Shown: one piece after another, positions 1 through 40,900 of the stretch
Numbering within the stretch: the stretch's first letter is position 1
How the letters are laid out: each line of letters starts with the position of its first letter
Virus record (IMG/VR): IMGVR_UViG_3300028735_000003
Coordinates: 124,001 to 188,000 of that record
Length of the DNA stretch: 64,000 nucleotides
Strand: one strand, 5' to 3'
Position numbers and translations under genes: made by a program
Notes under the pieces: model-generated
Database searches by the model: none
What the model was told of the DNA's origin: nothing
The model's input: the letters and a program-made list of their open reading frames with translations, nothing else

Positions 1-455
1 TCCAATGGAACAGCAATAACATTGCTTGGTAACTCAAGATATTCGTGTAATACACCAACATATCTTGCTGATAATTTAGAACTAAATAATTGTGGTCGGC
101 TATATACTATCGGTCCATGATTAAAAGTAATTGTATATGCTTGCTTATTTAGATTTTTGAATACATCAATATTATTAATTACAAGATAATCATCAGCGTC
201 TATTATAAATATATAATCCGCTTTATTTTTAGCTAGTTCTAAAGATTTATTTCTATTGGTAGCAAAATCAAACCACTTATGCTTATGGAATTCACCAGGA
301 ATATCTTTAAGGCAATTCTGAACAATATATTCTGTATTATCAGTAGAGCCAGTATCACATATAATCCAGTAATCAATAAATGGTTTTACAGAGTTAAGAC
401 ATCTTTCTATGCAATGCGCCTCATTTTTTACAATCATAGATAAACATATGGTCAT
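1..455 (-). CDS. GT2-family glycosyltransferase resembling the protein/peptide-modifying (SunS/flagellin-GT-like) type; runs off the left edge of the window
   Basis: Not in the ORF track; translated by hand from ATG at 455: MTICLSMIVKNEAHCIERCLNSVKPFIDYWIICDTGSTDNT...WFDFATNRNKSLE...YIFIIDADDYL...YVGVLHE. Contains the MIVKNE, DTGSTD, DF..RN, DxD (DADD) and G.xHE motifs; AGGA upstream. Confidence 0.85.
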   Translation of the reverse strand, partial: MTICLSMIVKNEAHCIERCLNSVKPFIDYWIICDTGSTDNTEYIVQNCLKDIPGEFHKHKWFDFATNRNKSLELAKNKADYIFIIDADDYLVINNIDVFKNLNKQAYTITFNHGPIVYSRPQLFSSKLSARYVGVLHEYLELPSNVIAVPL

Positions 456-476: not shown

Positions 477-1463
477 TTACTCATATTTTACAAGTATATA
501 TGCATCATAGCATATTAATTCGTTTAAGGAAAATATGGATACATTATAGTGAGCTGCTATAGCATTTCTTATGCTACCATTATTGTTTCCTACTGATAAT
601 TTTTCGCTGATATAACGAATTGGTTTTGTATCTTTTACGATAATATTTCCAGTAACAATTACTTCATTATTAGTTTCATCATATAATTGTATGGTTATCT
701 TTTCGCCAATATTATTAGATTTAATATCAATTACAAAAAATAATGTACGTGTTAGTCCAGATATTATAGTAGGATAATCTGCCATATCAATACTAGTGCC
801 GCCAACAACTCCATGGGTAACAGGCGTCATAGAGCTAACTATTGGTACTCGAACTGGTAAAATAGCGCCTGGTAATCCCTGAATACCAGGTGGTCCCTGA
901 AGACCTTGGTCTCCTTTTGGTCCTTGTATTCCTTGTGGACCTGCCGGTCCAACTGGACCCGTAGGACCAGGAATACCTTGTAGACCTTGAATTCCCTGAA
1001 CTCCCTGAACTCCTTGATCACCTTTTGGTCCTTGAGGTCCTCTAATTCCTTGAATACCGGCGGGACCCGTATCGCCTTTAGGACCTTGTGGACCTGTATC
1101 ACCTTTAGGACCAGTTGGTCCAATAGGTCCCATTGGTCCCGTTGGACCAATATCACCAGTATCACCTTTCGCGCCTATTTTACCTTCTGGTCCCTGTAAT
1201 CCTTGCGGACCTGTTGGTCCTGTATCACCAGTGTCTCCCCTTTCTCCAGTCATACCCTGTGGTCCTGTTGGACCTGGACTTCCAGAAATAGTAGCCACAG
1301 AATCGCCATCATAAAACATCCAACCAGATTTAACATTGTATCGTAAAGATGCTGTTTTACCATCTGCGCATTGGAAAACAATCTCTTTATCTGAATCGGT
1401 TCCATCACCAATGTATAATGTATTTCCAGGTATTGAATTTATCGGGCTGCTTAGTTTTGGCAT
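477..1463 (-). CDS. Collagen-like (Gly-X-Y) fibre/decoration protein; paralogue of 4877..5602
   Basis: Long uninterrupted G-X-Y tract (GPTGPQG...). Start moved to MPKLSS (ATG 1463) because the longer ORF overlaps the upstream gene and this N-terminus aligns with MAKIVS of 4877..5602. Confidence 0.8.
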
Positions 1464-1477
1464 GATTATCTCTTTAC

Positions 1478-1798
1478 TTAAATTGCCCAGGTTGCTATGA
1501 CTCTTATTGTAGGTTGAACTAATGTCCCAGGACCAGAATAATGTGCTCCAGTGAAATCTGGAGAACCAGTTACTGTCCAACCAACGTTATTTGTTCCATT
1601 ATAACCCACCATATGATAATATCTGACTTGTGTTGTTCCTGATCCTGCACCAACAGAGCAATAAACTGATGCCAATTTAGCATTTGGTAATGATGACTTA
1701 ACTGGGTCTTTAAACTCATGTTTTCCATCATATCTTACATCAGGTGCTGAAGAAGATACCGCAACATATGGAAGAGCTTCACCACTTAAATCAGCCAT
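1478..1798 (-). CDS. Small putative virion protein (106 aa)
   Basis: ATG at 1798 overlaps the upstream stop (TAATG coupling). Its C-terminal half resembles the N-terminus of 5616..8402. Confidence 0.65.
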
Positions 1799-2805
1799 TA
1801 GAAACCCACCAATGGTATTGTGCCAGGAACACTTGGAGTTCCATTCCAAGGAAAAATAAAATCATCGCATTGCCAAAATTGTCTTGTTGAATCATCTGGG
1901 TATGTTGTATCCACATATGATCCTAAATTAGCTGCAGATATATCTCCAAACCACAAATCATATATTTGCCCATGACGACCCTTAGCTCCGGTAGTTTCCG
2001 ACACGAGAGATATTGGATAAATATCATATTCATTGCTTATTTGATTTATAGAGCTAAAATTCTCTAATGTGGTTGCAGAGCCAAATCCCTCAGTGGCTAG
2101 ATACAATTTTGATGTTACAGAATTCATATAAGAAGTAAGAATTGCATTGTCATTATATATATCTAATCTACATTGAGTACTTAAATTACCGATACTACTA
2201 CCGGTTCTAAAAGCGACAATAAATGGATTTGTCCATCCACTTACTGGATTTTTTGGTTTGTCAAATAACCAAAATAAACCTGGGATACGTTGAGTTAGAT
2301 ATACTATCCTAGTACATTCTCCATCAGTACTCTGCATAATTTGCAACATAATATTGTCAGCAACGTTAGGATACCAATAGTCATTATTATTATCCAATAC
2401 AATCTGTGTCGTAGCAGTAGGTCTATTTAATGTTGAGCCGCCGGTAAATCCGCTAAGTCCGATTACAAATCCAATATATCTTGTACTGTATGAATATCCA
2501 AAATCTATACAAATCTCAAAATTGGAAAATATTCCAGTTTGTTTTAGAACTATCCAAGAATGTGCAACAGAACCTGCTGTTCCCCACTGAATATCATCTA
2601 TGGTATTCCACCTATCAACACCATCCATTCCTGCAGTGGTCTTGTTTGATGAGCCAGTAACAACCCATGGATTAGATTCAAAAGTTGTTAAGGCATTTTT
2701 AAGAGCCAAAATCATTTTTTTTGTATTAGTATGTTCATCACCAGTAGATGGTATCATTATATTTGGTTTAAATTGCCACGTTTTTTCAATTGTTGGTAAT
2801 GCCAT
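1798..2805 (-). CDS. Putative virion/fibre-associated protein, paralogue 3 of a tandem triplet
   Basis: Shares MALPT..KTW.F, NPW.V.GSS, AHSWIVL.Q, DGECTR, FWLFDKPKNPVSGW.NP, GRHG..YD and PWN with the two neighbouring genes. Confidence 0.7.
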   Translation of the reverse strand: MALPTIEKTWQFKPNIMIPSTGDEHTNTKKMILALKNALTTFESNPWVVTGSSNKTTAGMDGVDRWNTIDDIQWGTAGSVAHSWIVLKQTGIFSNFEICIDFGYSYSTRYIGFVIGLSGFTGGSTLNRPTATTQIVLDNNNDYWYPNVADNIMLQIMQSTDGECTRIVYLTQRIPGLFWLFDKPKNPVSGWTNPFIVAFRTGSSIGNLSTQCRLDIYNDNAILTSYMNSVTSKLYLATEGFGSATTLENFSSINQISNEYDIYPISLVSETTGAKGRHGQIYDLWFGDISAANLGSYVDTTYPDDSTRQFWQCDDFIFPWNGTPSVPGTIPLVGF

Positions 2806-2815
2806 TATATGTTCC

Positions 2816-3850
2816 TCATACGCTTCTATAAAAATCTGTTTTGTTCCATGGTAAGACTATGTTAGAAAAACACATAAATTCTCTGGCGCCAACTGCCGGA
2901 AAAGAATCTCCAGAATATAATACGCTGGATGTAAAATACATATCATAAATTTCACCATGTCTACCGTAACACCCAGGAGTTGTAGATGCCAAACCTATAG
3001 GGGTTAATGGCCATTCACCAGTTAATTGATTAGCGTATATTTGATTCTCTCCAATTGTTGCTGAGATATAAGCTTCTGTTGTCGCATATAGATACATGGT
3101 TGATGAATTAGCTACACCAATTATGGTGGCGTTATCATTTAATTGAGAATATGTAGCAGCAGTAGAGCCATTCAGTGCGTTGTATAAAAATATACATGGA
3201 TTAGACCATCCAGATACAGGATTTTTTGGTTTATCAAAAAGCCAAAATACTTTTGGAGTTAGTGCACTAAACGCAAATACTCTAGTACATTCTCCATCTG
3301 TACTCATCATACAACTTACATTATAACTAACAGGGACGTAACCGTTAATAAACAAATAATTATTTGGGAAACAGGTAATAACATCGGTTCCTGTCGGTGT
3401 TTGTGTAGTTACTGGTGAAGACAAATCAAATCCATTCAGTGGAGATACATATCCACAATTATAATAGGGGGAGGAATTTGGTTGTTTTAAAGAAATACAC
3501 ATTTCAAATTTAGTATTTATCTTTGGTTGTCTAAGGACGATCCAAGAGTGAGCGCTTCCACTAGGAGCCCAAACCAAATCATATATTGTTTTCCAATTAT
3601 CATTTGTATTTGCTACTAATGTTCCAGTATCAGATGTGGCTCCGTTTCTGCCAGACGATCCGCTAACAGTCCAAGGATTACTATTAATAACAGAATATCC
3701 ATCTTTGTCTTTCCATCCTGTAGGGTCAGTCAACATATTTTTTACAGTTAAATGGAAATTTCGCATATCTTCTTTATTGTCGTTATTACGAGTAAAATAT
3801 ACATTATTTGTCTTAAATATCCATGTTTTATCTAATGTAGGAATAGCCAT
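2816..3850 (-). CDS. Putative virion/fibre-associated protein, paralogue 2 of a tandem triplet
   Basis: Same conserved blocks as 1798..2805 and 3860..4867; AAGG RBS. Confidence 0.7.
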   Translation of the reverse strand: MAIPTLDKTWIFKTNNVYFTRNNDNKEDMRNFHLTVKNMLTDPTGWKDKDGYSVINSNPWTVSGSSGRNGATSDTGTLVANTNDNWKTIYDLVWAPSGSAHSWIVLRQPKINTKFEMCISLKQPNSSPYYNCGYVSPLNGFDLSSPVTTQTPTGTDVITCFPNNYLFINGYVPVSYNVSCMMSTDGECTRVFAFSALTPKVFWLFDKPKNPVSGWSNPCIFLYNALNGSTAATYSQLNDNATIIGVANSSTMYLYATTEAYISATIGENQIYANQLTGEWPLTPIGLASTTPGCYGRHGEIYDMYFTSSVLYSGDSFPAVGAREFMCFSNIVLPWNKTDFYRSV

Positions 3851-3859
3851 ATTATACCT

Positions 3860-4867
3860 TTAAGTAGTAACTGGTGTTGATTGATTCCATGGTAAGATTA
3901 TATCTCCAGCCTGTACGAATTGTTTTAAAGTTCCGCTTGAAGGATATGTATCCCCATTGGCAGGAGTAGTTGAGCCGAACCAAATATCAGATAATTTACC
4001 ATGACGACCATAAAATCCAGTAGTCATAGATGCTAGCCCAATCGAAGTAAATGGCCAAGCATTCGACAACGAATTAACTGTTGTTTGTCTTTCACCAACA
4101 GTCGCTGACACATAAAAAGACGTTGTATAATAACAGTTGGCGTTGCCAGTTTTACCGAACAAATTAGTAGCTTTTATGTATCCTCTTGCCGCATCATTTA
4201 ATACATCATATGTTGGCTCTAATGTAGAACACATAGTATTTATTGCTGGATTCGTCCATCCGGTTACTGTCTCTTTTGGTCTATCAAACTGCCAAAAACA
4301 TTTGATAACATTAGCCACGTATATCCATAATCTATTACAATACCCATCATCACTTATTTCTATATTTAAAACAGAACTAAATGGTGGCGTATTATTAGTT
4401 AACCACCCAGCGGATGCCAAATGTACCACTTCATCTGTAGCAGTTGGTCTTGTTAATGTTGATGGCGATGAAACATCAAATCCTGCGCCCAAAGAAGATA
4501 TTAGGCTTAATCTGTAACCAGAGCTATCTATTATATTTAAGTCTATACAAAGTTCAATATTCATGTCATTTATTTTGCTTTGTCTCAATACAATCCATGA
4601 ATGAGCTCCGCTATTCCAAACTAAATTTGTAATATTAGACCAATTATCAGCCGAATTAGCAGTAATAGAATTACTTGACGCGACAACTATCCAAGGATTA
4701 GATAATGTAGTTATTGCTCCAGACGAATCTGTCCAACCAGTACCAGAAGTCAATGCATTTTTTATGCCTAATAGAAGAGTACGATTATCTGTTAAAGCAA
4801 CACCTGATGTAGCATATGCTTGATTTACTTTAAATCTCCATGTATGTTCCAGTGAAGGTAATGCCAT
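3860..4867 (-). CDS. Putative virion/fibre-associated protein, paralogue 1 of a tandem triplet
   Basis: Same conserved blocks; GAGGA RBS. Confidence 0.7.
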   Translation of the reverse strand: MALPSLEHTWRFKVNQAYATSGVALTDNRTLLLGIKNALTSGTGWTDSSGAITTLSNPWIVVASSNSITANSADNWSNITNLVWNSGAHSWIVLRQSKINDMNIELCIDLNIIDSSGYRLSLISSLGAGFDVSSPSTLTRPTATDEVVHLASAGWLTNNTPPFSSVLNIEISDDGYCNRLWIYVANVIKCFWQFDRPKETVTGWTNPAINTMCSTLEPTYDVLNDAARGYIKATNLFGKTGNANCYYTTSFYVSATVGERQTTVNSLSNAWPFTSIGLASMTTGFYGRHGKLSDIWFGSTTPANGDTYPSSGTLKQFVQAGDIILPWNQSTPVTT

Positions 4868-4876
4868 AGTTCCTCA

Positions 4877-5602
4877 TTAGTACGAATATTCTATTGTAGC
4901 ATGTCTACATATAGCTACATTTGGACTTACCGACCCGACCAGACTTAATTGAACCTCATAATCTTTCATAGAGTTAGGAAAACCTCTTGTTGTTCCAGGA
5001 ATTAAAATAGCAGTTACAGTAGTTGGTACATGATTATTTGTAAATAAATTAGTTCCACTTACTTCTATATCATCAGTTGTATTATATAATCTAATGTAAG
5101 CATACCCATCAGTAGCTAATATATCAGCAATAAATAACCATGAACTAGCATCTGTAACTGATGGATCTAATCTTCTAATAGATCCCAATGTAGTATAACC
5201 ATTAGACGTACTAAAAACTCCTGCCAGACATGGGTATTCCCCTCGTAATAATCCGCCAGCAGTGCCAGTAGGACCAGTAGGTCCAGTTATGCCTGTCGGT
5301 CCTTGAGGTCCAGTGGGACCAGGATCGCCTTGAATACCCTGTATTCCTTGAATGCCCTGTACACCTTGTGGACCAGTTGGTCCAGTTGGTCCAGTTGGTC
5401 CAGTTGGTCCAGTTTGTCCAGCAGCAAAACTATGATATGCATATCCATCTGAATATTGCCAGCCGCCACCAATGTCAAACTTTAATGCAGCAATGTACCC
5501 ATCTGGTCTAATTGCTTCTATACGTTTTTCGGTGCCAGTGTCGTCTCCAATACGGATAACATTTTCATCTAATACATTGATGCCACTGACTATTTTAGCC
5601 AT
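4877..5602 (-). CDS. Collagen-like fibre/decoration protein (GPT-rich), 3 DGY motifs
   Basis: Central GPTGPT/GIQ collagen tract flanked by globular domains paralogous to 477..1463. Confidence 0.8.
5373..5408. repeat. 9-bp tandem repeat (ccagttggt x4) encoding the Gly-Pro-Thr collagen repeat
   Basis: Read directly from the sequence. Confidence 0.85.
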
Positions 5603-5615
5603 AGTGTTTACTCAC

Positions 5616-8402
5616 TTATATCTCTAGAGTTACAAATAAATTCTCAACTGCACAGGTGGCACTTGTCTCACATCTTATTGTAATCCAATCTCCTTCCACA
5701 ACGCTGAATGAATCTACTAAATTCTTAGCAACGTATCCAACTATACCAGCAGGCATAGAACTATCAAGTGTCAGTGTTAATGCTGTATCTATCTTATTTT
5801 TTCTTACAGTTATAATAACAGTTTCACCAGAAGATGGGGGTGTTGAACAAGTTACAATTAATCTACTTACCGTTGCAGTAGGTGCATTGACAACATATGC
5901 AGGGAAGTTCTCACTTCCAGCACCAGTTTCAATAGCCATACTTACAATGTACCCGTCTAGAGGCGGAGAACTTGTCAATGCTCCATATGCGCCAACAGTA
6001 ATTGCTGTAGAGCCCGCGCTTATAGAGTGAGTATGTAAAGCATCTGCATTGCTTCCATTACATAATTTACTTATATTTAGACCTGTCACTTGCTCTGCTA
6101 CATGATATCCATCAATTGCGAAATTTTCTGTTATTGTAGATGACCCACCAGGTAAATCTATATAAGCACCAGTTTTAGAATTAGCTTTCAAATATGCTTG
6201 TGGTCCCATTAGATTTATGAACAAATTCATATTGGACCCATCAAGATATATGTGGTCTGTTTGTGCATTGGAATTGAATATTACATCTGAATTACCTAAT
6301 ATCGTACCAGCATCAATATGAACTTCATATCCATCTAAATTAAGAGATGTTGCTGAAGTAACGTTTACTTCATAGCCATCTAGATTAGTAACAAAATCTG
6401 TGCTACCAATTAATAACTCGTCTGATGTATTAGTTGACCATACTGGAATATCTATATTATTTAAACTATTTCTGGCTGCCGATCCCAATGTATTGTTAGG
6501 AACTCTAAGTGCTCCAGATTGAGCGGCAATATATGTACCTGTTGCCGATGGCGTGACTACTACTGTAGATGCCATCATTGGCAAGTTAGAAAGCAAGGTT
6601 AAATCATCACCATTTTGCACACTAGCAAACTTCCAATATCCATCAGATTCGCTCCAAATTATTGCAGAGTGGTCTCTATCGGTGATTCCGTCAGCGCTGC
6701 CTCTCTGAATTGATATACCAGTAATCAATGTTGGTATTGGGGCAATACCAGTGGTATAATTTAAGTGAATTACTCTGTCTGCGATATCTACAACTGTGCT
6801 ATCAATAGATGTTGTGGTACCTACAACCTCAAGATTTCCCATAATAATCGTATTATTTGTGGCGGAGCCAATGACTACACGATTATATCCATCAGATCCA
6901 ATCAAATATATGTCATCAGAATTAGTGGTGTTTCTAGCCATAATAGCTGCAACACCATTTGGAACACGTATCATACCATCTTGGGATGGATTTGTACCAA
7001 TGTTAAAATAAGGTCCATACCCATCTATTCCAATATTAGCTCTATTAATACCTCCTAATTCAAATTGAATAAATCCAGGCTGTGTTCCACTGTTGCCGTT
7101 ACCAGAGCTTAGAACCAACCCTCCACCTTGAAATGCTCCAGAAGTATCCTGTGCTCTTACTGTTAAATTTTGTGTAACACCATTAGTAGAATCTTGTAAT
7201 ATAATTGGAGATGTTAATGCATCGTCAAATCTAAATGATTTTGCATTTAACCAAATACTATCATTATCAGTTGGATAAATTGCATTATTTGAGAATATAG
7301 TTAATTTGGTTTGGTTTGCAGTCTTAAAAGATATATCTCCATTACGACTACCAGAACCAGATTGAAGAATTAATTTTCCACCATAACCAGAAACGTCTGT
7401 TGTATTTTGTGCCTGAATCGTTAATATCTGCCCATTACCAACTGTTGTTGTAGTTTGATAAATAATCGGAGTATTTGCATCTATTGAAAATCTGGCAAAC
7501 GAATCTCCCAATTCTACAAATGACACGCCATTAACAAGAAAACTATGATAATATGTTGCAGCAACACTATTAAGTATGCCTTTATTTATAGAGTCACCAA
7601 TATATATAGTATCGCCAATGCTTTTAATCAAATTAAGATTATTACCAAGTGTGTCTATAGAATAGATTGAATCGCCATTTTGCAATCTAATAGTTCCAGT
7701 AGTTGGGACATTGCTAAGTCCATGCGTTATATGGTCGCCAACCAGTAGTTCTTGTGTAACATAAACAGGATTTGTTATTGAACCAAGTTTTACCCTATTC
7801 GATCCATCTATCTGTACAATATCTACGTCTGCAGTATTAGATGCATTTCTTCCTCTAATAACAGAATCATTTGGATTATAATTAGGAATACGTATTATCC
7901 CTGATTGTGCAGGATCTGTGCCAACTGCCAAATATCCATCGATAGATAACGATCCTGTAAATACAGGAATAGATGCGCCAACAGTAGTTCCATCGCCAGA
8001 TGTATTGTAAGCAAACTTCCATCCAGATAATGTTTCATCCCAGAATAGACAAGCGTGATCTCTAGGAATTAAACTAGAAGTATATCCTCTAACAGCCGCC
8101 AAACCAGTGATTTGTGGTGGTGGTGGAACTGTATCTAAATAAGGGGCAGTTGGAGGATGAATCCAATCATAACTGTTTATATGAAAGAAGTATCCATCTG
8201 TTGAGTTAGTAGGTTTTAAGAAATTCTCTACTGCTGATTGAACTATTCTATTTACAGTTATATTTACAAAATTAGCAGAATTATAAATAGGTGGGGCATA
8301 CTTTGCTATTGAATCGGGTTGATCATTAACAATCCAATCAACATATCCAACGGCTCCTGGTGCCGCTGTATTGTAGGCTCTCATATAATATTGTATTGGC
8401 AT
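5616..8402 (-). CDS. Long tail-fibre-like virion protein with internal repeats, 9 DGY motifs
   Basis: 928 aa, rich in G/S/T/N/I and beta-type. Internal repeats such as ITG...RG...RDH...W...WKF and SG.IR.PN...RN..N..D. Lies in the fibre cluster. Confidence 0.7.
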   Translation of the reverse strand: MPIQYYMRAYNTAAPGAVGYVDWIVNDQPDSIAKYAPPIYNSANFVNITVNRIVQSAVENFLKPTNSTDGYFFHINSYDWIHPPTAPYLDTVPPPPQITGLAAVRGYTSSLIPRDHACLFWDETLSGWKFAYNTSGDGTTVGASIPVFTGSLSIDGYLAVGTDPAQSGIIRIPNYNPNDSVIRGRNASNTADVDIVQIDGSNRVKLGSITNPVYVTQELLVGDHITHGLSNVPTTGTIRLQNGDSIYSIDTLGNNLNLIKSIGDTIYIGDSINKGILNSVAATYYHSFLVNGVSFVELGDSFARFSIDANTPIIYQTTTTVGNGQILTIQAQNTTDVSGYGGKLILQSGSGSRNGDISFKTANQTKLTIFSNNAIYPTDNDSIWLNAKSFRFDDALTSPIILQDSTNGVTQNLTVRAQDTSGAFQGGGLVLSSGNGNSGTQPGFIQFELGGINRANIGIDGYGPYFNIGTNPSQDGMIRVPNGVAAIMARNTTNSDDIYLIGSDGYNRVVIGSATNNTIIMGNLEVVGTTTSIDSTVVDIADRVIHLNYTTGIAPIPTLITGISIQRGSADGITDRDHSAIIWSESDGYWKFASVQNGDDLTLLSNLPMMASTVVVTPSATGTYIAAQSGALRVPNNTLGSAARNSLNNIDIPVWSTNTSDELLIGSTDFVTNLDGYEVNVTSATSLNLDGYEVHIDAGTILGNSDVIFNSNAQTDHIYLDGSNMNLFINLMGPQAYLKANSKTGAYIDLPGGSSTITENFAIDGYHVAEQVTGLNISKLCNGSNADALHTHSISAGSTAITVGAYGALTSSPPLDGYIVSMAIETGAGSENFPAYVVNAPTATVSRLIVTCSTPPSSGETVIITVRKNKIDTALTLTLDSSMPAGIVGYVAKNLVDSFSVVEGDWITIRCETSATCAVENLFVTLEI

Positions 8403-8414: not shown

Positions 8415-10268
8415 TTATGCTCTTGATAATTCTCTCCACTCAACAGTAGCAAATGCTCTTCTGTCATCAGCGCCTATTGTAGCTGTATCAACTCGTACTA
8501 TTAGTTCATTAGTAGATGTTGTTATTGTTGTGGTCCAGCCAGTGCCATTATCTGTAGCTAGTGTAGACTTTATTTCATCCAAAACTAAAGTTCCAGATTC
8601 TTGATGAGCTAATATATCATAAATAAATCTTGCGCACGTAGGCGTTCCGCTTGTATTTACAACAAGGATTCTAACACACATTTCATAGGCTTTACCATTT
8701 TCAGTTGTTATATTTGCTGACGTACCTGGGATGGTTAAATCAAATTGACCACCGTTGATTTGATATCCATCTAATAAAATTCTAGAAAATTGCGCATCTC
8801 CAACTGATGCCCAGTAATTTAATGCATAAGTTTGTTGCCCAGAAATTCTCGATTTGGCAGCATAACCACATGCTGAAGCATATGTTGCGGATACTGTATT
8901 TCCATATCCATCAGCTATTCCGAACTCTCCATTAATAGTATTTGAATTTCCAAATACATGGGAATTATCAGCAGTGACTATATTATTCGACCCTATAACG
9001 GAAGAATTCTTAGAAGTTACGTTATTACTAGAACCTAACAAGATAACACTATCAGCCCCGCTTACTGTATTTTGTGTACCAGTTATAACAACTGAATATT
9101 CACCACTTACTATGTTTCCAGCACCAGTGATAATTGTAGAAGAACCAGATGTGGCTTGATTTAATACACCATTAATAACTGTAGAAAGACTACCCGAAGC
9201 AGTATTATTTGATCCGTTTAATATAGCAGACAAATAGCCATCGGCGGAATTGTGTATTCCATTATTAATAGATCCTAAATGTCCTGTAACAGAGTTAGAT
9301 AAACCTCCAATAATGGATGCATAATAGCCATCAGCTATATTATTCGACCCGCCAAATATAGACGAATACGGCTTAGTTATAGAATTATAGCTTCCCCCCA
9401 ATATGGAGGCAAATTCTTCAGAAATCGAGTTTTCTAATCCCCCGCCAATTATAGAATAATCAGCCGTAATTGTGTTTCTATATCCGCCAACTGATGTAGA
9501 ATAGTTTCCTGATACACCAATACTCAAATTACTACTTGCTAAATTGACAATACCAATCTTTGTATTATCAATTACCGACTGACTAACGGGTCTATTAGCA
9601 ACTATATTTTGTGATTCATAAAGAGGGTTGAAGACGATAGGTAATCTTGTTGGAACCCAAGATGATGACTGCCATATTAATGCGTAACCATCAGATGGTG
9701 TAATGGCAGATACGGGGCGTCCTTGAATACCTATTACTGTTTGATCTGTTTTTGTTCCTGAAAGATCTCTATATGCACTAAAACCAACTTGTGGCTCCCA
9801 ATATCCGTCAATGTTATTCCATGTAAGATGATATCCGTCAAGCGGCATTGTTGATACCAATGGTCTGTCTTGCAACCCTATTACAGTCTGGCTGTAATAT
9901 CCTCCAGACAAATCTCCACCAGCCGACCAAAAATCAGTTGGAATCAATTGCCAAAGATTATTTCTGCGTTGGTACAGTCCCTCATAGACATAACCGTCTC
10001 TTCTAAGGTACAGAGAACCGTTAAGCCTATTTTCTGTTGGATATCCATCACCAACACTAATAGAAACACCGCCATATCCATCTATATAAAATGGATTAGT
10101 AACATTTGGTGCAGGTGCATGTGGGTTGTTTATTCTCGCTTCTAGAATATCTAATCTAACACGAAGATCTGCATAAACTCCAAATGGAGCTATGCCCAAC
10201 ACTCTTTCTATTGTTTGCACCGCATTAATTAGATTATTAATAGCGATTGTTTTATCGTCAATAACCAT
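8415..10268 (-). CDS. Tail fibre/adhesin with beta-helix (YadA-head-like) repeats, 10 DGY motifs
   Basis: Two DLSG....QTVIG.Q.RP.....P.DGY...W repeats, followed by many ~14-aa S.I.GG..N repeats. Confidence 0.7.
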   Translation of the reverse strand: MVIDDKTIAINNLINAVQTIERVLGIAPFGVYADLRVRLDILEARINNPHAPAPNVTNPFYIDGYGGVSISVGDGYPTENRLNGSLYLRRDGYVYEGLYQRRNNLWQLIPTDFWSAGGDLSGGYYSQTVIGLQDRPLVSTMPLDGYHLTWNNIDGYWEPQVGFSAYRDLSGTKTDQTVIGIQGRPVSAITPSDGYALIWQSSSWVPTRLPIVFNPLYESQNIVANRPVSQSVIDNTKIGIVNLASSNLSIGVSGNYSTSVGGYRNTITADYSIIGGGLENSISEEFASILGGSYNSITKPYSSIFGGSNNIADGYYASIIGGLSNSVTGHLGSINNGIHNSADGYLSAILNGSNNTASGSLSTVINGVLNQATSGSSTIITGAGNIVSGEYSVVITGTQNTVSGADSVILLGSSNNVTSKNSSVIGSNNIVTADNSHVFGNSNTINGEFGIADGYGNTVSATYASACGYAAKSRISGQQTYALNYWASVGDAQFSRILLDGYQINGGQFDLTIPGTSANITTENGKAYEMCVRILVVNTSGTPTCARFIYDILAHQESGTLVLDEIKSTLATDNGTGWTTTITTSTNELIVRVDTATIGADDRRAFATVEWRELSRA

Positions 10269-10363: not shown

Positions 10364-10936
10364 TTATGAGGGGAAAATTATTAAATTCATTGATATTGGG
10401 ATTACATTAGCAACCCAATGTGTTTCTATAGAACTGCTACCACTTACCTGCACAGACAATACATTGGAAGAATATACTACTTGATAATAATATGAATTAT
10501 GCAAATATGGCGGCACGATATTAACCGATTCAATATTATATAGTAAACCTGAGATAGTTCTTAATACAATACGATCATACCAACATGATGTATGACCAAA
10601 AATATCAGTTGACATTATATGTACTAGAAGCGAACCATAAACATTATCCCCCCAAGGTATAGATATTATATTTGTATAGCCGTCATCATACGTGATGACA
10701 GAACCAAAATAACCATCAGATGGTCCAGTTGGTCCAGTAGCTCCAGTTGGTCCAGTAGCTCCAGTTGGTCCAGTAGCTCCAGTTGGTCCAGTAGCTCCAG
10801 TTGGTCCAGTAGCTCCAGTTGGTCCAGTAGCTCCAGTTGGTCCAGTAGCTCCAGTTGCACCACTAGGCACACTAGAATCAATAACGTATTTTAGTCCATC
10901 CCATTTTAGATATCCTGGATTTGGCAATGATGTCAT
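10364..10936 (-). CDS. Short collagen-like protein with (GATGPT)7, 2 DGY motifs
   Basis: G-X-T tract. Start moved to MTSLP (ATG 10936), which is preceded by a GAGGA RBS. Confidence 0.75.
10729..10854. repeat. Perfect 18-bp tandem repeat x7 (ttggtccagtagctccag) encoding the GATGPT collagen repeat
   Basis: Seven identical units counted directly. Confidence 0.95.
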
Positions 10937-11133
10937 ATCGTCCTCATAGCGGCGCCATATACGATATGATATCAAAAAAATAGTATGATCACAGGTCAGA
11001 TATCAATTTTTTAAATTCATCACTGGATAATTCTACAGCGTTAGTAATTTTTTTTAATGGGTTTTCATGATCTTTAGCTTGAATAATTATTAATACCTTA
11101 CCGCCATCTGTCTTTCTTGCTTCTATAAATGAT

Positions 11134-31996: not shown

Positions 31997-32968
31997 TTAT
32001 TTGAACCACCACTGGTTGTTTAGATACCATGGGACACATAAATTTGATAATCCATCAGACAGCTTAATGGTGGGTTTCCAGCCAAGTTTTTTTAGTTTAT
32101 CTGAATTGATTGAGTATCTAAAATCGTGCCCATTCTTTCTAGGATCTTCAACGAATGTTATCAAATCATGACCAGTCTTCATAACATTACATATATTTTG
32201 TATTACTTCAATATTAGAAAACTCTTGATTTGCAGATATGTTGTATATTTCGTTTGGTTTACCCTCCTTTAACACAGTCATAATTCCAGTACAATTATCG
32301 AATACATGAGTCCAGTCTCGTAGCTGCGAACCCTGTCCGTAAATAGGAATAGGAATGCCCTTTAGAATGTTTTTTATAGCTTTTGGAATCAACTTTTCGG
32401 GCGACTGCCTTGGTCCATAGTTGTTAGCAGACCTAGTAATGTTATAAACTAAACCATGCGATTGGTTGGCTGCTTTTACGATTAATTCTCCAGCAGCTTT
32501 TGTAGCAGCATATGGATTACGAGGGTTGATAGGAGAATCTTCAGTCCATGAAGGCTCATCTTCAGATGTTAATTGACCATATACTTCATCTGTTGATATG
32601 TAAATAAGTTTTTGAACACCATGTTTAATGCAAGCATTTACTATAACTTGTGTTCCTAAAACATTAGACGTTACAAACGAATTAGGATCAATAAATGAAT
32701 GGTCAACAAAAGTCTCGGCAGCACCATGTATAACTATATCTGGTTTTTCAAATTGAAAAATTACATCAATAACATGTTGATCCCTGATATCTGCTATATG
32801 AAATGTATGATTTTTGTTCCAATACATAGAATTAATGACGTTTGAATTAATTCTATCTATACTAACAAAAGAATAAGGTTGTTTCTCATAGATAGCCTTA
32901 CGAATGAAGTTTCCGAATATAAACCCACAGGATCCAGTTATTAAAACTTTTGGTCTGTTATTGTTCAT
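31997..32968 (-). CDS. rfbB: dTDP-glucose 4,6-dehydratase-like NAD-dependent SDR
   Basis: VLITGSCGFI, HGAAETFVD, STDEVYG, YAATK, NNYGPRQ.PEKLIP, RDWTHV.D, HDFRYS. Confidence 0.85.
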   Translation of the reverse strand: MNNNRPKVLITGSCGFIFGNFIRKAIYEKQPYSFVSIDRINSNVINSMYWNKNHTFHIADIRDQHVIDVIFQFEKPDIVIHGAAETFVDHSFIDPNSFVTSNVLGTQVIVNACIKHGVQKLIYISTDEVYGQLTSEDEPSWTEDSPINPRNPYAATKAAGELIVKAANQSHGLVYNITRSANNYGPRQSPEKLIPKAIKNILKGIPIPIYGQGSQLRDWTHVFDNCTGIMTVLKEGKPNEIYNISANQEFSNIEVIQNICNVMKTGHDLITFVEDPRKNGHDFRYSINSDKLKKLGWKPTIKLSDGLSNLCVPWYLNNQWWFK

Positions 32969-32971
32969 TAA

Positions 32972-33802
32972 TTACCTATCATATATGTTAAATTTTTGAT
33001 TTTTTTCGTACATATATTGATCTAGACAATATCGATGTTGCCATTTTTCTCTAAGATATATCAGGTTATGGTTCAAAAATAACCTATTTGTAGGAACCTT
33101 CTTAAGCGAGCTGCTATCTTCATGATAAATATTGGTATTACCACAATATAGAATCTTCTTTTCCATATTATAGTGAATTGCTAAACACAAATCTACATCA
33201 TCAAACCCCCAATGATATTTTTCATCCATTCCATCATTGCCAGATTTTACATTGTGATGAACTTTTCTGTAATATTCTGCTTTAGTTAATAAAACAGCAC
33301 CTGTAACGACTTGAAATAAACGATTTTTCTCAGCAGCATCATCTGTAATTTCATTAAGTCTAAAATGAACAGGCGCTTTGTTATCGTGATTAAATACTAC
33401 ACCAGCATGTTGTAGTCTATTGGTATTTGTAAATAGTAATCTAGCTCCAACAACACCAATACTAGAATCTTTGTCCATTAATCTAATCATTTTTTCAATT
33501 GATGTCTTATCATTAAATATGATGTCATTGTTTAGTAATAGAACATAGTCATTATCATTCGGAGCTGCCTCGTTAAAACACATATTTGTGCCCTGAGAAA
33601 AATTCTGAAGATTATTTGGGTGCTTTATTAGTTTTATATTACCTCTCCAAGAGGCAACTATTTCTGCAGTATTATCTGTTGAAGCATTATCTTTTATAAT
33701 CCAATTATACTCGATATTAGATAAAGCAGGCAAAAGCGAATCTTTTAGTTTAGTTAACTTATCTATTCCATTCCAAGTCAAAGTCAATATATGTAGCATC
33801 AT
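32972..33802 (-). CDS. GT2-family glycosyltransferase
   Basis: DNASTD, NFS...N, LLLNND, VVGARL, QHAGV, VTGAVLL, DDVDLCL, H..S.S. Confidence 0.88.
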   Translation of the reverse strand: MMLHILTLTWNGIDKLTKLKDSLLPALSNIEYNWIIKDNASTDNTAEIVASWRGNIKLIKHPNNLQNFSQGTNMCFNEAAPNDNDYVLLLNNDIIFNDKTSIEKMIRLMDKDSSIGVVGARLLFTNTNRLQHAGVVFNHDNKAPVHFRLNEITDDAAEKNRLFQVVTGAVLLTKAEYYRKVHHNVKSGNDGMDEKYHWGFDDVDLCLAIHYNMEKKILYCGNTNIYHEDSSSLKKVPTNRLFLNHNLIYLREKWQHRYCLDQYMYEKNQKFNIYDR

Positions 33803-34015
33803 ATTTTCTTTCTATATCTGTCAGTTCTTTTTTTTATTTGCACACATCCGGCGACATCTGCCAAACTTGATTTTATTTATAGTGGTATCACAAATAGTTT
33901 TACATTCATTACGCCTTAAAGAATATGGAGTAGCTTGCCATCTATAAAATATGATATATCTTACAAAGATATTATTGCTACTCTATTCATTTTACTAAGA
34001 TATAGTATTACTAGA

Positions 34016-35035
34016 TTAAAACCCCATACTTAAATTGCTTCCAACCATAAAATTACCAGTATAATCTACTTGTATAGATGGTCCAAGATATGTATTTCTA
34101 ATTAGCCCTGAAGAAAATAATTTAGACATATTAAAGTTAATTGGATTAATTATCATCACAAACCTTTTGCTTACCACCTCATATCCAAGACCTAATTGTA
34201 AAATACTTATATTTGGATTGGGTTTATATTGTCCATAACTCATCATACCCAAAGTAATGCCCGTATTAAATGTACCTTGAATACTAGATGTATTTAAATT
34301 AATGCCCCCACCTGATGTTAAAAATAATCTTGGATTCCAAAACTGAAAACTAGCGGAAGGATATTCTTGCTTCGTCTCTGTCTTATCAATACGCAAATCA
34401 TATGATCTGCCATCTACAATAATACTAAATTTATTATATACATACTCGCGCTGATTCTCATCAATACCGGTTATAGTAGCTACCTTATATTGCCTTGGTA
34501 AAATATTAACAAACCAAGGCTCTTTTTTCCAAGCAGAAAACCCTACAGTGCCAATTGGTACGGCAAAAGAACCGAATTGCTCAGATAATGTTAAATCACG
34601 TCTTGCCGTTAAATACCCATTAGGGTCAGCATTTGGACATGGAATTTGCTTTCCATTGCAATCCACTGTGGGAGTTTGAGGATTTGGATTTATTGGACCC
34701 GTCCCTGTACTAGGAACATTATCTTTCTTTACTCCTCCACTAGTTACAGTAATCACATTAATAGCCTTAATTTCAGCATGTAGTTTATCCATGTCATTTC
34801 TAATAACATTTATATCTACACCATTATTTTTGGCGAATACTTCAATATCTTTTTTAGTAGCATACTCATTTAAACTTCGTGTTATATTATCAGATAATTC
34901 TTTTTGTTTTACAACTTCTGTTTCTATGGCTTTTTGTCTCTCAGACATTTCAAACTGCTTGTAAATTATTAATGAGACAGCACAAACAGCAACAGTTACT
35001 ACTAAAATTATTAATATTTTATTTGATAATGACAT
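34016..35035 (-). CDS. Membrane-anchored protein with N-terminal TM helix, coiled coil and beta-rich C-terminus; possibly spanin-like
   Basis: ILIILVVTVAVCAVSLIIY TM segment, helical stalk, amphipathic strands ending GSNLSMGF. Start is ATG 35035 or TTG 35065. Confidence 0.55.
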   Translation of the reverse strand: MSLSNKILIILVVTVAVCAVSLIIYKQFEMSERQKAIETEVVKQKELSDNITRSLNEYATKKDIEVFAKNNGVDINVIRNDMDKLHAEIKAINVITVTSGGVKKDNVPSTGTGPINPNPQTPTVDCNGKQIPCPNADPNGYLTARRDLTLSEQFGSFAVPIGTVGFSAWKKEPWFVNILPRQYKVATITGIDENQREYVYNKFSIIVDGRSYDLRIDKTETKQEYPSASFQFWNPRLFLTSGGGINLNTSSIQGTFNTGITLGMMSYGQYKPNPNISILQLGLGYEVVSKRFVMIINPINFNMSKLFSSGLIRNTYLGPSIQVDYTGNFMVGSNLSMGF

Positions 35036-35094
35036 AATGACATAACCTTGTGTTAAGACATTCAATAGACTTCTATATCTTCACCTATACCAAA

Positions 35095-35799
35095 TCATTT
35101 CTTCCATTTATTAACAAAAATTTCCCTGGCAGATTTATACAGTTGATATGTATTCAATTGAGAGCTTGTTTGCCTTCCAAAATGTACAACCGGTATAGAT
35201 ACTACTTCAAGAGGTATGCCAATTTTTTTTGCTCTGAAAGATAAATCTGTATCTTCGAAATATGCGATTCCAAATTCCTCTGAGAAAATCTGTGGAACAC
35301 ATGCGTCTGTAATTATACATTCTGTTTTCCTAGGAATATCTAATTGCGACCATATGTGTTTTGACCCAGCAATACACCATCCAGATAAATATGACTTTCC
35401 AGACAGTTTTTTATTTGCTTCCATTACAAATTCTAAATTATCATTTAATAATCCCATTGTAGGACCACATAGTGAATTTGCACATTTATCTATTAATGGT
35501 TTTGTCCAATCTTCATGATTGGACCTAACCCTTATATCATTGTTTAAAAATAAAACATTTGGAGCGGTTGCCAAATAATATCCAATATTACAGGCTTTTG
35601 CAAATCCCATATTATATGAATATCGCTTGTATACAATTTCTGTAGATTCTTTTAAAGATGATTCTGTTTCATCTGTACTTCCATTATCTACAATAATAAT
35701 TTCATGATCATTAGTGAGTCTTGTTAGATCTTTTAAGCAAGATCGTGTAAAGTTGTATTTGTTGAATACTGGGACTACTATGCTTAGTATTTTATTCAC
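35095..35799 (-). CDS. GT2-family glycosyltransferase
   Basis: LSIVVPVFN, IIIVDNGSTD, GFAKACNIG, FLNND, YFEDTDLS. Confidence 0.9.
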   Translation of the reverse strand: MNKILSIVVPVFNKYNFTRSCLKDLTRLTNDHEIIIVDNGSTDETESSLKESTEIVYKRYSYNMGFAKACNIGYYLATAPNVLFLNNDIRVRSNHEDWTKPLIDKCANSLCGPTMGLLNDNLEFVMEANKKLSGKSYLSGWCIAGSKHIWSQLDIPRKTECIITDACVPQIFSEEFGIAYFEDTDLSFRAKKIGIPLEVVSIPVVHFGRQTSSQLNTYQLYKSAREIFVNKWKK

Positions 35800-35947
35800 T
35801 ATTTAATCTCTCTTTTAATATATATTTATGATTTATATTCCATAATCACATATTTAATTCCAATTTTCGTTTTGTAAGTTATTACTGCATTATAATCAAG
35901 TTTATAATATTGAATATGATCAGACCCTCACATTTATATGTATTTTA

Positions 35948-37084
35948 TCATATACACAGACTTAAAATCTTCCTGGCAGCCTTTTCCCAAGTATAGTTTA
36001 TAATAAGCTCTTGCATATTTGGAGAAAATTTCGAATGATAATCGTTGTAATTACCTACGACATCTTTTAATGCTTGCGCAGCTTTATCTACATCTGCCGC
36101 AAATACCTTAGCATAAGGAGAGGGTTCCCAATATTGCATTCTTGCATCAGCTCTTATTTCCTTTCCATCTATAAGTACAGAATTCTCATCATTCATAAAG
36201 TCTAATTGTCCTCCATAACGTGGGGCAATTACGATTTTGTTAGCGCCAAATCCTTCAAGTCCAGGCATCCAAAAACATTCCGCATATGACATAGAAAATA
36301 CAATGTCACAAGAATTATACAGTGCTTCAATATCTGGAATGAAGTGGTCAATAATCTCTACATCACCGTGTTTTCTAAAGTCTTGGCAGAAATCTCTATA
36401 TATATCGTTAAACGGAACGCTATCTGTTGTATCTTGCGGACTCTTTCTAGATACTTTTAAAACAAGACATACATCATCTTTATTAGTAAATGCTTTACCA
36501 TACGCCTTTAGTACATTAGGAATGTTTTTTCTCAAATGCGGTTGGGCAATATTGACAAGTATCTTGTATCTCTTCTTTGTCTTTAATGGATATTTGCCTA
36601 CTGTAGAAAACTTTTCCAGATTAATTCCGTGAGGAACAACTACTTGATGATTTTCTGGTATTCCATTGTCAACAAATATCTTCTTTGAAAATTCAGAAGA
36701 TGGTAATACTTTATCTACGCTTTTATACGCTTTGGCAAAAGCTTTTGGTAAAACTGTTGTCTCATAATTCCAAATACCAAACCTATTTTTATCGCCCCTT
36801 ACAAAATAATGCGCGAAATTCTTTAGTGCTGTATATGATAATTGCATATCATATGATCTATCTAAAGACGAATTAATATAATTAATTAATTCTGGTGTAA
36901 ATGGATCTCCTTCTTCTATACTTCCCTTTAGAAAAGGTTGTAAATCATCCGGGAAATGAGTTCTACCGTTAGTAGAAAATAAATCCACTGTATGACCCAT
37001 CTTGATAAATTCTCGTGAGAGATTTTGAGCTACAATGGACCAAGAAAAATTTTTGGCGAGAAAACCAAACCAGCATATTTTCAT
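35948..37084 (-). CDS. GT4 (GT-B fold) glycosyltransferase
   Basis: ETT..P, PSSEF, VVPHGI, RKN, LYNSCD, AECFWMPGLE (E-x7-E), GGQLDF, YTWE. Confidence 0.85.
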   Translation of the reverse strand: MKICWFGFLAKNFSWSIVAQNLSREFIKMGHTVDLFSTNGRTHFPDDLQPFLKGSIEEGDPFTPELINYINSSLDRSYDMQLSYTALKNFAHYFVRGDKNRFGIWNYETTVLPKAFAKAYKSVDKVLPSSEFSKKIFVDNGIPENHQVVVPHGINLEKFSTVGKYPLKTKKRYKILVNIAQPHLRKNIPNVLKAYGKAFTNKDDVCLVLKVSRKSPQDTTDSVPFNDIYRDFCQDFRKHGDVEIIDHFIPDIEALYNSCDIVFSMSYAECFWMPGLEGFGANKIVIAPRYGGQLDFMNDENSVLIDGKEIRADARMQYWEPSPYAKVFAADVDKAAQALKDVVGNYNDYHSKFSPNMQELIINYTWEKAARKILSLCI

Positions 37085-37976: not shown

Positions 37977-40900
37977 TCAAGCAGGTAGTATGTGCAAGAA
38001 AGGAACAAAATTATAGCTGTGAGCATATGTATCGCTTGGGCTACCATCACCATATGTAGACGGATTATTATAAGTAATTACCAATCTGACCATCTTACAA
38101 ATAGCTGCTTCTAATCCGCTTCCAGGAGATAGACTCAAATGTACTTCATAAACAAAATCAGAGGCTCCTTCAGATAATTCCGATGCTATATTGTTAGAAG
38201 ATAAATATGTAGCTTCTGTATTAGTGGTAGTCATACCAGTCATATAAATATAACTATGTGTAGACACATTATACAATTGTATTTGGGCAGTATTTGCAAC
38301 ATTAGTGGTCTCAAGTATAGCTTCCAGCTTAATTTCCTTTAAAGATTGACCAATGTATTTATCAAATCTAAATGGGAAAGCACCAATAACAGTTGGAGAA
38401 GCGCTATTATGAGAGAACACTCCAGCAGTACCATAAATATATACCGGATTCTTATAGTAGAAGCTTGGATCTAACTTACCATATCCATCAGTCTTAGGAA
38501 CTCTGTTAGCATCAAGTGTGCCACGAGAAAAAGATCTAACACCTTCTAGATCATAAACGAATTGATAACTTAATGCACCACCAGAACTCATTAATACTGT
38601 ACCATAAGGACCAGTATCATTAAGTCCTGTACCACCATGAATGATTGGTAACACACCAGTTACTTCTGTTTCAAGATCAATTAATGTGGATGGACCGCCA
38701 ATTGCAGGACCACTGAATACACTAATCAGTGATAATATATTCTGTACCTTAGCAGAATCAACAAATAAAGGAGTATTGTTAAATCCGCCTTTCTTAAGAT
38801 ATACGCTTATCTGAATCTTAGTACTTAGCGTTCGTAATACTAAATCTTCATATAAATTAGTGAAGTTAAGTGTCAATAAACCGTTCTCATAATCTACAGA
38901 AACCCCTATTTTACCATCAACAATGATACCTTCATATCCATCTCCAATACCATTAGTATTAGGAGAAAATGACTGTACGGCTACAGAAAATCTAACCTGA
39001 TCTTTAGTCAATGCATCAGATTGAACAAAAGAACAATCAGCGAATCTCATGGCTGGAAATCCAAGTTTGGTTAATCCAGTTGGTAATCCTGTTGTTCCAT
39101 CAAGTTCGCTAGCAATAAAGTCTTGTAATATATTTATTGTTTTTTCTGAAGAGTACAATCCATTTGGAATCTCAATAACAACAGTACCTACTTCGAAATC
39201 TACCTTATAGAAAGTGCCATCAGGTCTCTGAAGATCTCCTTCTCCAATAATAATGTTATTTGGGGCAAATATATCTATCTTACCAGGATCAAAGTCTGGT
39301 TGAGATGAAAATACATTACACAATATACCATCTAAAGAGCAAGGATGACTGCCTGCCCCAGACAATGTTGTAAATACGGTTGGAACTAATTTTGCTTTGC
39401 TGTTACATACTATTAGATTTTCGTTCCATGTTAATTGTTTTTGAACATTAAACGCGACTGGTTCTGTATAAAAGTTATGATTTGCAAAATAAGTATCTCC
39501 TTCAAATACATCTTGTGGTGGGTGTATCTCAGTAGGTCTTCCAGTAGATACTGAAGAATAATCGTCAGTTCTATCAATGAATTTTTCTACTTTAAGTCTT
39601 AATACATTAAACTTTGTGCCGATTTTTGTGTAAGGATCTGTGGTTGGAGCCGGATATGTTTGGAATGGGGACGAAACATGATGAACCCTATTTATGTAGT
39701 TTTGTACTAAATAACCATCTCCAATAGTTACGGCAAAATCTCCATTGATATCAGCGCGAAGCATCTGAGCAATAGTATCTCCAGTAAGTATAACTTTTCG
39801 GATGGTTAATACATCTGATGTTCCATCAACGCCAACAATATCAAAAGCCCCCTTGTTAGTTAGGTCTGAAGGAGAAACAATTACTAATTTATAGCTTGAA
39901 ATCCCTATAATTGAACTAAAATCTATAGTGGAAGATGTAAACAAGCCTATTCTTTCATCATTAGGATCTGCAAGTAATACTCCATCTAATGCGCTAGCAA
40001 CTACTGACCCATATCCATCAATTAATTGGAACTCTAAACCAAATGCATTATTAAATGGATTGATGTAGGCACTGTAACCGTTAGTATATGTAGTAGTGAT
40101 TCCATCAGTTGTAACAATTGAATCTTGTGGTAAACCTGTATTAAAATTGAAACCAAGATATGATACTAACAAATCAAGATCTGTTGAATCTATGATGCCA
40201 TCTCCGTTGACATCACCTACAATCATAGAGCACAATCTAGCGTCAGATACACGATAATATATATTTGGTCTATCGGCATCTGGAGTAATCTTAGCATCTA
40301 CAAAATCACCATTTAATAAATTATATTCTAAATTAATAACAGACGTATCATATCTTCCTGTATCAGTTTGATCTGTTACAATCCTTATTAAGATTTCATC
40401 TCTAGCAAAAGTTGCAGCATGTAAATTAGAAGCAAATACTGAGCCGGCAGGGTCGAAAGATTTTTTATTTTTATCTGATATGGCACCCAGTATTAATGGC
40501 TCAGATGCAGCTTCGAGATTTACAATATCGGTTGAATTAAGCAATCTTATTTCAGGCACGTATTCTTGTCTTGAATCAACTGGTTGCCCAGTTCTTTGAT
40601 CAGGAATAGGTACACTCTCCAATGTTGTTGCTGACAAAACTGCTCTATATACATCATTCCCCGTAAATTGCAAACCTTTATACGAATAGTCTACGGTTGC
40701 TTGTGTAGTAGTGTCCACCGTAGTCTTAGGTATAATAACACCGTGTCCTGTATCATATCCTTGACCATCCGAGATCTTTGCGGCAGATGTCCAAATTCTG
40801 AACCATAAATCTTCTTCTGGTATGTCAACCCACAATGTTCCAGTAAATGTGGTAATTCTGGAATTATCAAGCCTATTAGAACCATTATCAATTAGAATAT

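Follow-up and report, generated by a model that had tools for sequence, protein, structure and literature searches.

A conserved Asp-Gly-Tyr motif with lineage-specific gains in the fibre and baseplate proteins of an uncultivated clade of large phages

How does a tripeptide come to stand in one phage fibre protein and be missing from the equivalent position of its paralogue? This question is raised by a 64,000-nucleotide stretch of DNA (hereafter the window), which comprises bases 124001-188000 of a 353,765-bp virus record in IMG/VR (IMGVR_UViG_3300028735_000003; approximately 34% G+C, estimated to be 79% complete). All genes within positions 1-12000 of the window lie on the minus strand, among them a cassette of fibre genes in which the tripeptide Asp-Gly-Tyr (DGY) recurs. 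An initial annotation of positions 477-8402 had proposed that DGY is gained and lost independently at equivalent positions of paralogues and internal repeats, with existing turns being converted in some proteins only. We found that selection maintains DGY in the distal-tail proteins (fibres and baseplate) of the clade to which this phage belongs, and that its history is one of a fixed core with lineage-specific gains and losses and no free toggling.

From upstream to downstream, the cassette encodes a collagen-like protein of 203 amino acids (aa), a 617-aa protein, a 928-aa protein, a 241-aa collagen-like protein, three paralogues of 335-344 aa (the triplet), a 328-aa collagen-like protein and a GT2 glycosyltransferase. 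The same gene order was also found in related metagenomic contigs. Among GenBank phage records there was no megablast match to the DNA and no tblastn match to two large proteins, and the clade is therefore without a named relative in that collection. The Pfam collagen family PF01391 was matched by all three collagen-like proteins above its cut-off of 27.2 bits, with 82.2 bits for 477-1463, 35.9 for 4877-5602 and 32.8 for 10364-10975.

We first checked the strings on which the initial annotation had relied, and all of them were present in minus-strand open reading frames (ORFs). The 241-aa collagen-like fibre protein (4877..5602) reads RPDGY and YSDGY where its 328-aa paralogue (477..1463) reads CADGK and FYDGD. 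All three Asp-Gly (DG) dipeptides of the former are DGY (codons starting at 5503, 5449 and 5110), and none of the three in the latter. The third triplet member (335 aa, 3860..4867) has SDDGYCNR, with its DGY encoded by codons 4348-4340, where the first (335 aa, 1798..2805) and second (344 aa, 2816..3850) have STDGECTR. The first contains no DGY, and the second has one (KDKDGYSV) that is common to homologue P0013. The 928-aa fibre protein (5616..8402), in which 9 of 14 DG are DGY, contains WDETLSGWKF, WSESDGYWKF, QIDGSNRV and GSDGYNRV.

The compared positions were also found to be equivalent. Identity between the two collagen N-domains is 33-38% (E 5e-7 and 9e-8), and the start at 1463 of the 328-aa protein is backed by its N-terminal alignment with the paralogue and with orthologues. 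The triplet proteins share 42-44% mutual identity. Three copies of a module of approximately 90 aa in the 928-aa protein were recovered by Smith-Waterman alignment against 500 shuffles (z of 18 for A/B, 17.5 for A/C and 9 for B/C); these internal repeats went unreported in a BLASTP self-comparison at E<=1.

It was noted that the enrichment of DGY is beyond chance and stronger than the initial annotation could have known. Genome-wide, DGY was observed 87 times against 16.1 expected (P = 6e-35), which makes it the top-ranked tripeptide. The virion (structural) block accounted for 73 copies against 6.7 expected (approximately eleven-fold; P = 6e-49), and the genome outside this block for 14 against 9.4 (P = 0.1). 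The six proteins initially annotated held 14 copies against 0.65 expected (P = 1e-14). The signal is specific to the exact tripeptide D-G-Y; DGF, DGW, DGH, xGY and DxY were without comparable enrichment. Its flanks have no fixed context; position -1 favours T, L, Y, I and F, and proline is found near the motif only at -2 (7 of 86 sites, 2.1-fold). DGY was carried by 28 different ORFs of the structural block, comprising fibre proteins and large baseplate-region proteins, and several other large proteins of the same block had none.

Some copies lie in modules that have been duplicated (the three of the 928-aa protein, the hairpin units and the beta-roll repeats). It is nevertheless very improbable that the signal is an artefact of composition, of amplified repeats or of a DNA word, with no selection on the tripeptide, and this explanation ranks last among those that we considered. 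Besides the P values above and the spread over 28 ORFs, the codons of the motif vary (GAT/GAC, GGN, TAT/TAC), and gains were seen from unrelated tripeptides in non-repetitive orthologues. All 41 copies in the window lie in coding frames of one strand, which together with the codon variation places the signal at the protein level and rules out a DNA-level motif. The same protein families are not enriched outside the clade: the triplet family at large had 7 DGY against 7.0 expected, and numerous homologues of the 617-aa protein lack DGY, so that a general property of these fibre families was also rejected.

Two further sets of proteins, both outside the window, were noted during this examination. 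A 437-aa protein outside the virion block (genome positions 8877-10190) has DGY at 4 of 4 DG in Kelch-like contexts (DGYVYLF, DGYIYLF), and ORFs of similar size show the same pattern in the related genomes G009 (404 aa, 4 of 4) and G017 (415 aa, 6 of 6), the likeness being one of size and pattern only. The tripeptides LAK and VRQ are among the most enriched after DGY because of five tandem paralogues of 580-887 aa (genome positions 341562-353484) that are rich in LAK (9-14 each) and VRQ (4-6 each).

We sought to place this enrichment among relatives. In 53 homologues of the 928-aa protein, 439 of 665 DG continue as Y, or 22 times the expectation. The 617-aa fibre protein (8415..10268), which consists of a conserved N-domain, two hairpin units and a beta-roll like that of UspA1/YadA, has DGY at 10 of 10 DG, and 10,306 proteins are related to it at E up to 0.001. 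In the best 150 of these relatives, DGY use was bimodal: it took up 27 of 31 or 16 of 17 DG in some proteins, and 0 of 30 or 1 of 38 in the rest of the examples. In the hairpin unit that they share (G-L-Q-G-x-P-V ... P-x-D-G-x-x-L-x-W), the DGY-rich proteins have Y at the position that holds E, Q, D or N in the DGY-poor ones. Three more genomes of the clade, of 448-480 kb each, were taken whole, and the observed versus expected counts over the four genomes were 87/16.1, 80/21.8, 57/18.9 and 43/18.3, concentrated in the same large tail proteins. These results demonstrate that DGY enrichment is a trait of an uncultivated clade of 350-480-kb phages.

A clean presence/absence comparison of genomes was ruled out, as the DGY-poor G009 still holds ancestral sites (2.3-fold enrichment). 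The simple ORF set of G009 (452 kb; loci L046-L065 and L086-L088) was itself enriched in RRR, AAA and RRG, a possible sign of unusual coding or of ORFs called in the wrong frame, and the DGY count expected for it may be slightly inaccurate. The contig L015, which carries P0205, encodes a 1660-aa fibre homologue with 27 of 31 DG as DGY and precomputed Pfam matches to DUF5907 and ALK_LTK_GRD; DUF5907 may equal the repeated hairpin unit.

The four genomes yielded 123 four-way orthologue groups, in which 268 tripeptides had at least 60 occurrences. DGY was the most conserved of these 268, with 49% of its occurrences in columns identical across all four genomes, and DGS and DGT were conserved far less often. 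In 6 of 8 pairwise comparisons, 65-100% of DGY were retained in the orthologue (33-100% over all eight), where general tripeptide identity was 12-33%. Within the window, the large baseplate-region proteins (1347, 2387, 1365 and 742 aa) and a sheath-initiator-like gene (37977..57748, minus strand) hold 15 DGY, some kept in all four genomes and others specific to this one. Top-ranking conservation, and invariant sites in large, partly internal baseplate proteins, would both suit a purely structural turn motif. Such a motif would be an Asp-Gly type-I' turn followed by a tyrosine whose hydroxyl caps the turn or bridges the subunits of trimeric fibres, and it would stabilise long-lived extracellular tail parts. 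The restriction of DGY to one phage clade would be left unexplained by this account.

Alongside this core, new sites have been created. We counted lineage-specific DGY that differed in at least two residues from all three other genomes and found 7 in structural proteins against 0.96 expected (P = 6e-5); the same class in non-structural proteins numbered 1 against 1.4 expected. Examples are NSN/GND/GST, DSS/DNN/DAN and GGS/GGG/GGG, each opposite DGY. Seven three-against-one losses were also recorded. Among 66 cases of members without DGY in variable columns, D was kept in 32 and G in 37, but Y in only 9, and the residues replacing tyrosine were mostly N (11), T (10) and S (9). These columns and the excess of structural gains bear out the proposal that existing turns are converted in some proteins only, and support Asp-Gly turns as the usual substrate for new DGY.

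The core DGY sites are thus ancestral and conserved above any other common tripeptide, and further sites were gained, and sometimes lost, per lineage. The initial annotation had named ancestral, conserved DGY as the outcome that would tell against its view. This outcome was found in part, as DGY ranks first of 268 in the four-genome orthologues, and gains were still in excess. The lineage-by-lineage creation and loss of sites accounts for the differences between paralogues and repeats that had first been noticed.

One gene of the cassette was compared by eye. The 203-aa collagen-like protein (10364..10975) has two DGY (SDGY and DDGY) just past its collagen repeats, without counterpart in the L004 orthologue (L004:2131-2685), in which APYE and ETGV stand at roughly these positions. 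This genome would have two further gains of its own here.

The individual cases differed in their histories. In the triplet column, DG was kept in 113 of 123 homologues, and the next residue was Q in 55, E in 33, A in 10, S in 7, K in 6 and Y in 4. The closest relatives of 3860-4867 under 97% identity have Q at the tyrosine position, so that the tyrosine of 3860-4867 is derived, with Q or E as the ancestral residue. On a tree of 108 triplet homologues, Y arose 2-3 times among 38 changes in the column. Taken alone, the triplet column thus has no excess of convergent changes, for which the initial annotation had proposed a test; an excess of new DGY was seen in the structural orthologues of the four genomes (7 vs 0.96). 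Homologues outside the clade carry E, Q, D, N, S or T in place of the tyrosine. A column that keeps DG but seldom Y, together with the E, Q, D or N of DGY-poor hairpin units, bears out the earlier suggestion that the tyrosine is dispensable for these folds.

The collagen N-domain gave no match in a search of a large protein index, and six sequences from related loci were used. At the RPDGY site, 4 of the 6 have DGY and 477-1463 has DGK; judged by these alignments, the site looks old, and 477-1463 more likely lost DGY or never fixed it. The YSDGY site looks patchy, with DGY in 2 of 6 and DGD, DGI, DGV or NGT in the others. In the 928-aa family (n = 54), DGY stands at residues 69, 155, 587 and 816 in 42, 46, 41 and 28 sequences, respectively. 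The WSESDGYWKF site has DGY in 41 of 45 aligned homologues and the WDETLSGWKF site in none, which marks an ancient and stable difference between repeats where independent toggling had been supposed. GSDGYNRV is common to the 52%-identical L004 orthologue, few other sequences aligning there, and the QIDGSNRV column has DGY in three homologues. The initial interpretation thus holds in part: the folds can do without the tyrosine and DG turns become DGY in excess, but many sites, WSESDGYWKF included, are ancestral and strongly conserved.

We then examined where the motif sits in the folded proteins. The model of 3860-4867 was confident (predicted local distance difference test, pLDDT, 96.5), and D173-D174-G175-Y176 connects strands 165-172 and 177-184 as the turn of a beta-hairpin. 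DGY sits on Asp-Gly beta-turns. The best solved match to this protein was the JBD30 baseplate (PDB 8rk3), chains K and G, with Foldseek probabilities of 0.98 and 0.97, template-modelling (TM) scores of 0.43-0.50 and approximately 10% identity. With lengths of 317 and 305 residues, these chains are presumably gp47 and gp48. In JBD30, gp47 and gp48 have similar folds, and three heterodimers build each lateral fibre (PMC11445458). The triplet proteins resemble this fold, and tandem paralogues stand beside baseplate genes in both phages. However, JBD30 has two paralogues and the phage here has three, which may form heteromeric side arms. Among the viral structures predicted in BFVD, those with the triplet fold included structural proteins of the virions of several phages, and three of the accessions were consecutive.

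In the 617-aa protein, residues 253-473 match the UspA1 head (3pr7, E 7.3e-17), and the Pfam family LbR_Ice_bind scores 51.7 bits. Its beta-roll matches the repeats of the trimeric adhesin head of UspA1/YadA, but the UspA1 repeats read A-K-G-R where those of the phage read A-D-G-Y, which indicates that DGY has been overlaid on surface positions of an existing repeat. For the 928-aa protein, no solved relatives were found, and the model of its N-terminus was too poor for use (pLDDT 66.8, with both DGY regions below 50).

The hairpin-turn position in a confident model is again compatible with a structural turn. Homologous domains elsewhere, however, have E, Q, D, N, K or R at the tyrosine position, the replaced residues are small and polar, as expected of exposed loops, and a single stabilising device would need to work in collagen N-domains, beta-rolls, hairpin units and a gp47/48-like fold alike. 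Tyrosine stood far above phenylalanine at conserved sites (46 DGY vs 1 DGF, and 41 vs 2 in the 928-aa family), a preference that a structural motif would share with hydroxyl-dependent tyrosine corners. The tyrosine corner is the LxPGxY element of Greek-key beta proteins. It resembles DGY in placing a hydroxyl-dependent tyrosine beside a turn that contains glycine, with phenylalanine poorly tolerated. It differs in being fold-bound and universal where DGY is clade-specific and found on unrelated folds, and its L-x-P-G-x-Y consensus is not matched, as the tyrosine of DGY follows glycine directly with no intervening residue. That no modifying enzyme tracks the trait also speaks for structure. We regard the purely structural account as rather unlikely overall, and it ranks second.

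The polar residues that replace tyrosine, the alignment with K-G-R in UspA1 and the rare acceptance of phenylalanine together suggest that the tyrosine is solvent-exposed and that its hydroxyl matters. An exposed tyrosine on a DG turn could serve as an acceptor or recognition element for post-translational modification, and this is the explanation that we place first, if tentatively. The exposed tyrosine would form a short acceptor or recognition element that is modified in the infected cell, and O-glycosylation via the phage's own sugar pathway and glycosyltransferases would be the leading candidate. Pre-existing DG turns would be one substitution short of becoming sites, and this would account for the finding that almost all DG in the fibres are DGY. 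The suggestion of the initial annotation that DGY is an evolvable modification tag, and that the virion may mix tagged and untagged fibres, is likewise hypothetical. The motif was found to be enriched only on the proposed target class of proteins (the virion-block counts) and appears exposed there, given the N, T, S, E or Q aligned with its tyrosine and the hairpin turn in the model. Also in favour of an acceptor or recognition role are the clade-wide trait, the bimodal use of DGY, its high conservation, the excess structural gains, the preference for Tyr over Phe, the sugar genes beside the tail genes and the likeness of the cassette GT2 to known enzymes.

Confinement to host-facing virion parts, an apparently exposed position without flanking context, and a copy number that rises in the fibres of some lineages could also point to multivalent weak glycan binding. 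An aromatic and an acidic residue are the usual chemistry of lectin sugar sites; here the tyrosine would stack on a sugar and the aspartate would hydrogen-bond, giving adhesion to host capsule, mucus or exopolysaccharide. Binding loops usually diversify, yet DGY is the most conserved tripeptide. Three residues are also few for a site, and several copies belong to shaft repeats and to baseplate proteins, for which contact with the host is improbable. Glycan binding is accordingly ranked third, and we consider it improbable.

Returning to modification of the tyrosine, we assessed the sugar genes of the window. A cluster of five minus-strand genes (31997..37084) adjoins the baseplate genes and comprises a dTDP-glucose 4,6-dehydratase-like gene (31997-32968), a GT2 (32972-33802), a membrane-anchored protein of 349 aa (34016-35065), a second GT2 (35095-35799) and a GT4 (35948-37084). 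The dehydratase-like gene, the two GT2 and the GT4 lie directly upstream of the baseplate genes, and the dehydratase-like gene and the GT4 form a core in all four genomes. The dehydratase-like enzyme scores 334 bits, under the cut-off of 365. By its gene content, the phage is equipped for making and transferring sugars. The 349-aa protein begins with a hydrophobic helix, contains a charged helical stretch and has a C-terminus rich in beta structure; it had no Pfam, PHROG or NCBIfam match, yet it is kept in all four genomes.

The last gene of the cassette (3..455, minus strand) runs off the left edge of the window, which contains only the N-terminal part of its product, a GT2 glycosyltransferase of 356 aa whose C-terminus is helical and TPR-like. 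The full gene was available as L005:15385-16455, in which Pfam Glycos_transf_2 covers residues 7-91 and designed-TPR chains match residues 169-284. This GT2 is 61-77% identical among relatives whose fibres diverged much more. Its nearest solved relatives are 7msk, GmaR and SunS, enzymes that glycosylate polypeptides. As in SunS/ThuS and GmaR (PDB 7msp, 7msn, 7msk, 22ao), its GT-A domain precedes a helical TPR-like domain. The residues modified by those enzymes are Cys, Ser or Thr, unlike the proposed tyrosine acceptor, and against the SunS family TIGR04195 of NCBIfam the cassette GT2 reaches 48.3 bits, far below the cut-off of 350. It is, by its sequence, a distant relative only of the SunS family.

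The distribution of these enzymes was uneven. The SunS/GmaR-like GT2 is present in G000, G001, G004, G007, L008 and L018, and more distant GT2 homologues (35-38% identity) occur in loci that are not DGY-rich. As the enzyme of DGY it is unsupported, being absent from the complete, DGY-rich G017, whose fibre locus has 19 DGY among 47 DG. The glyco-cluster GT2 is absent only from G009/G010, which have the lowest-DGY fibre loci (1 DGY among 32 DG). GT2 counts of 6, 3, 2 and 0 follow the DGY ratios of 5.4, 3.7, 3.0 and 2.3, a series of four genomes only. Pfam searches of the four genomes for GT8, sulfotransferase_3, 2OG-Fe(II) oxygenase_3 and protein kinase returned nothing above cut-off, and a tyrosinase search was uninformative, as no control genome matched.

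Several points weigh against modification of the tyrosine. The modification is so far hypothetical, the exposure of the tyrosine is read from substitution patterns, and the extreme conservation within large internal baseplate proteins would be just as expected of a structural role. Non-structural proteins show neither depletion nor enrichment of DGY. The SunS/GmaR-like GT2 is missing from both G017 and G009, which are complete and DGY-enriched, and G016 and G018, though poor in DGY, have the glyco-cluster GT2. The substrate of the glycosyltransferases could instead be the Gly-Pro-Thr collagen repeats, DNA or host polysaccharide; Bacillus BclA is an example of glycosylated Gly-Pro-Thr repeats. 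We know of no tyrosine-directed DGY sequon, and literature searches for the DGY motif found neither one nor anything else relevant.

Known glycosylation sequons include N-X-S/T and, for O-glycosylation in Bacteroidota, D-S/T-[AILVMT]. Mycobacteriophages carry glycans on capsid and tail. We know of no sequon with a tyrosine acceptor. The comparison with such short sequons and with glycosylated phage and spore fibres draws in part on the text of a review (PMC12619734). DGY resembles these systems in having three residues without context, in standing on surface proteins, in being gained and lost by point substitution and in having viral sugar genes nearby. It differs in that its candidate acceptor is tyrosine, in that its modification is a proposal and in that no transferase co-varies cleanly with it. 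The bolder idea, that DGY is the sequon of a new tyrosine-directed fibre modification, such as tyrosine O-glycosylation by virus-encoded enzymes, with a site number tuned by evolution into a programmable coat on the host-recognition apparatus, is doubtful.

Other genes of the window were also noted. A PhoH-like protein (794 aa, 12508-14892) contains a LAGLIDADG homing-endonuclease segment at residues 469-620, and the large subunit of ribonucleotide reductase (15302-18787) is oversized at 1161 aa. Relatives of both genes in L018 and L019 have Intein_splicing, HNH and LAGLIDADG matches, and the two insertions are probably inteins whose presence differs between relatives. A 934-aa protein (28932-31736) has a weak match to the PHROG tubulin PhuZ family at residues 569-698 (E 8e-8). 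Between the sugar cluster and the baseplate genes, a 156-aa ORF (37134-37604) matches the Cas12f1-like TNB domain (62 bits) and looks like a TnpB-like remnant or a small nuclease.

As the most enriched and most conserved tripeptide of host-facing proteins, and one that is re-created on surface turns, DGY indicates a function under strong selection that no annotation captures. As a modification site, it would represent a new sequon and give phages a new means of coating or tuning their fibres. A structural or adhesive role would make it a portable surface element able to function on unrelated folds. In either case, DGY provides a simple sequence marker for this uncultivated clade.

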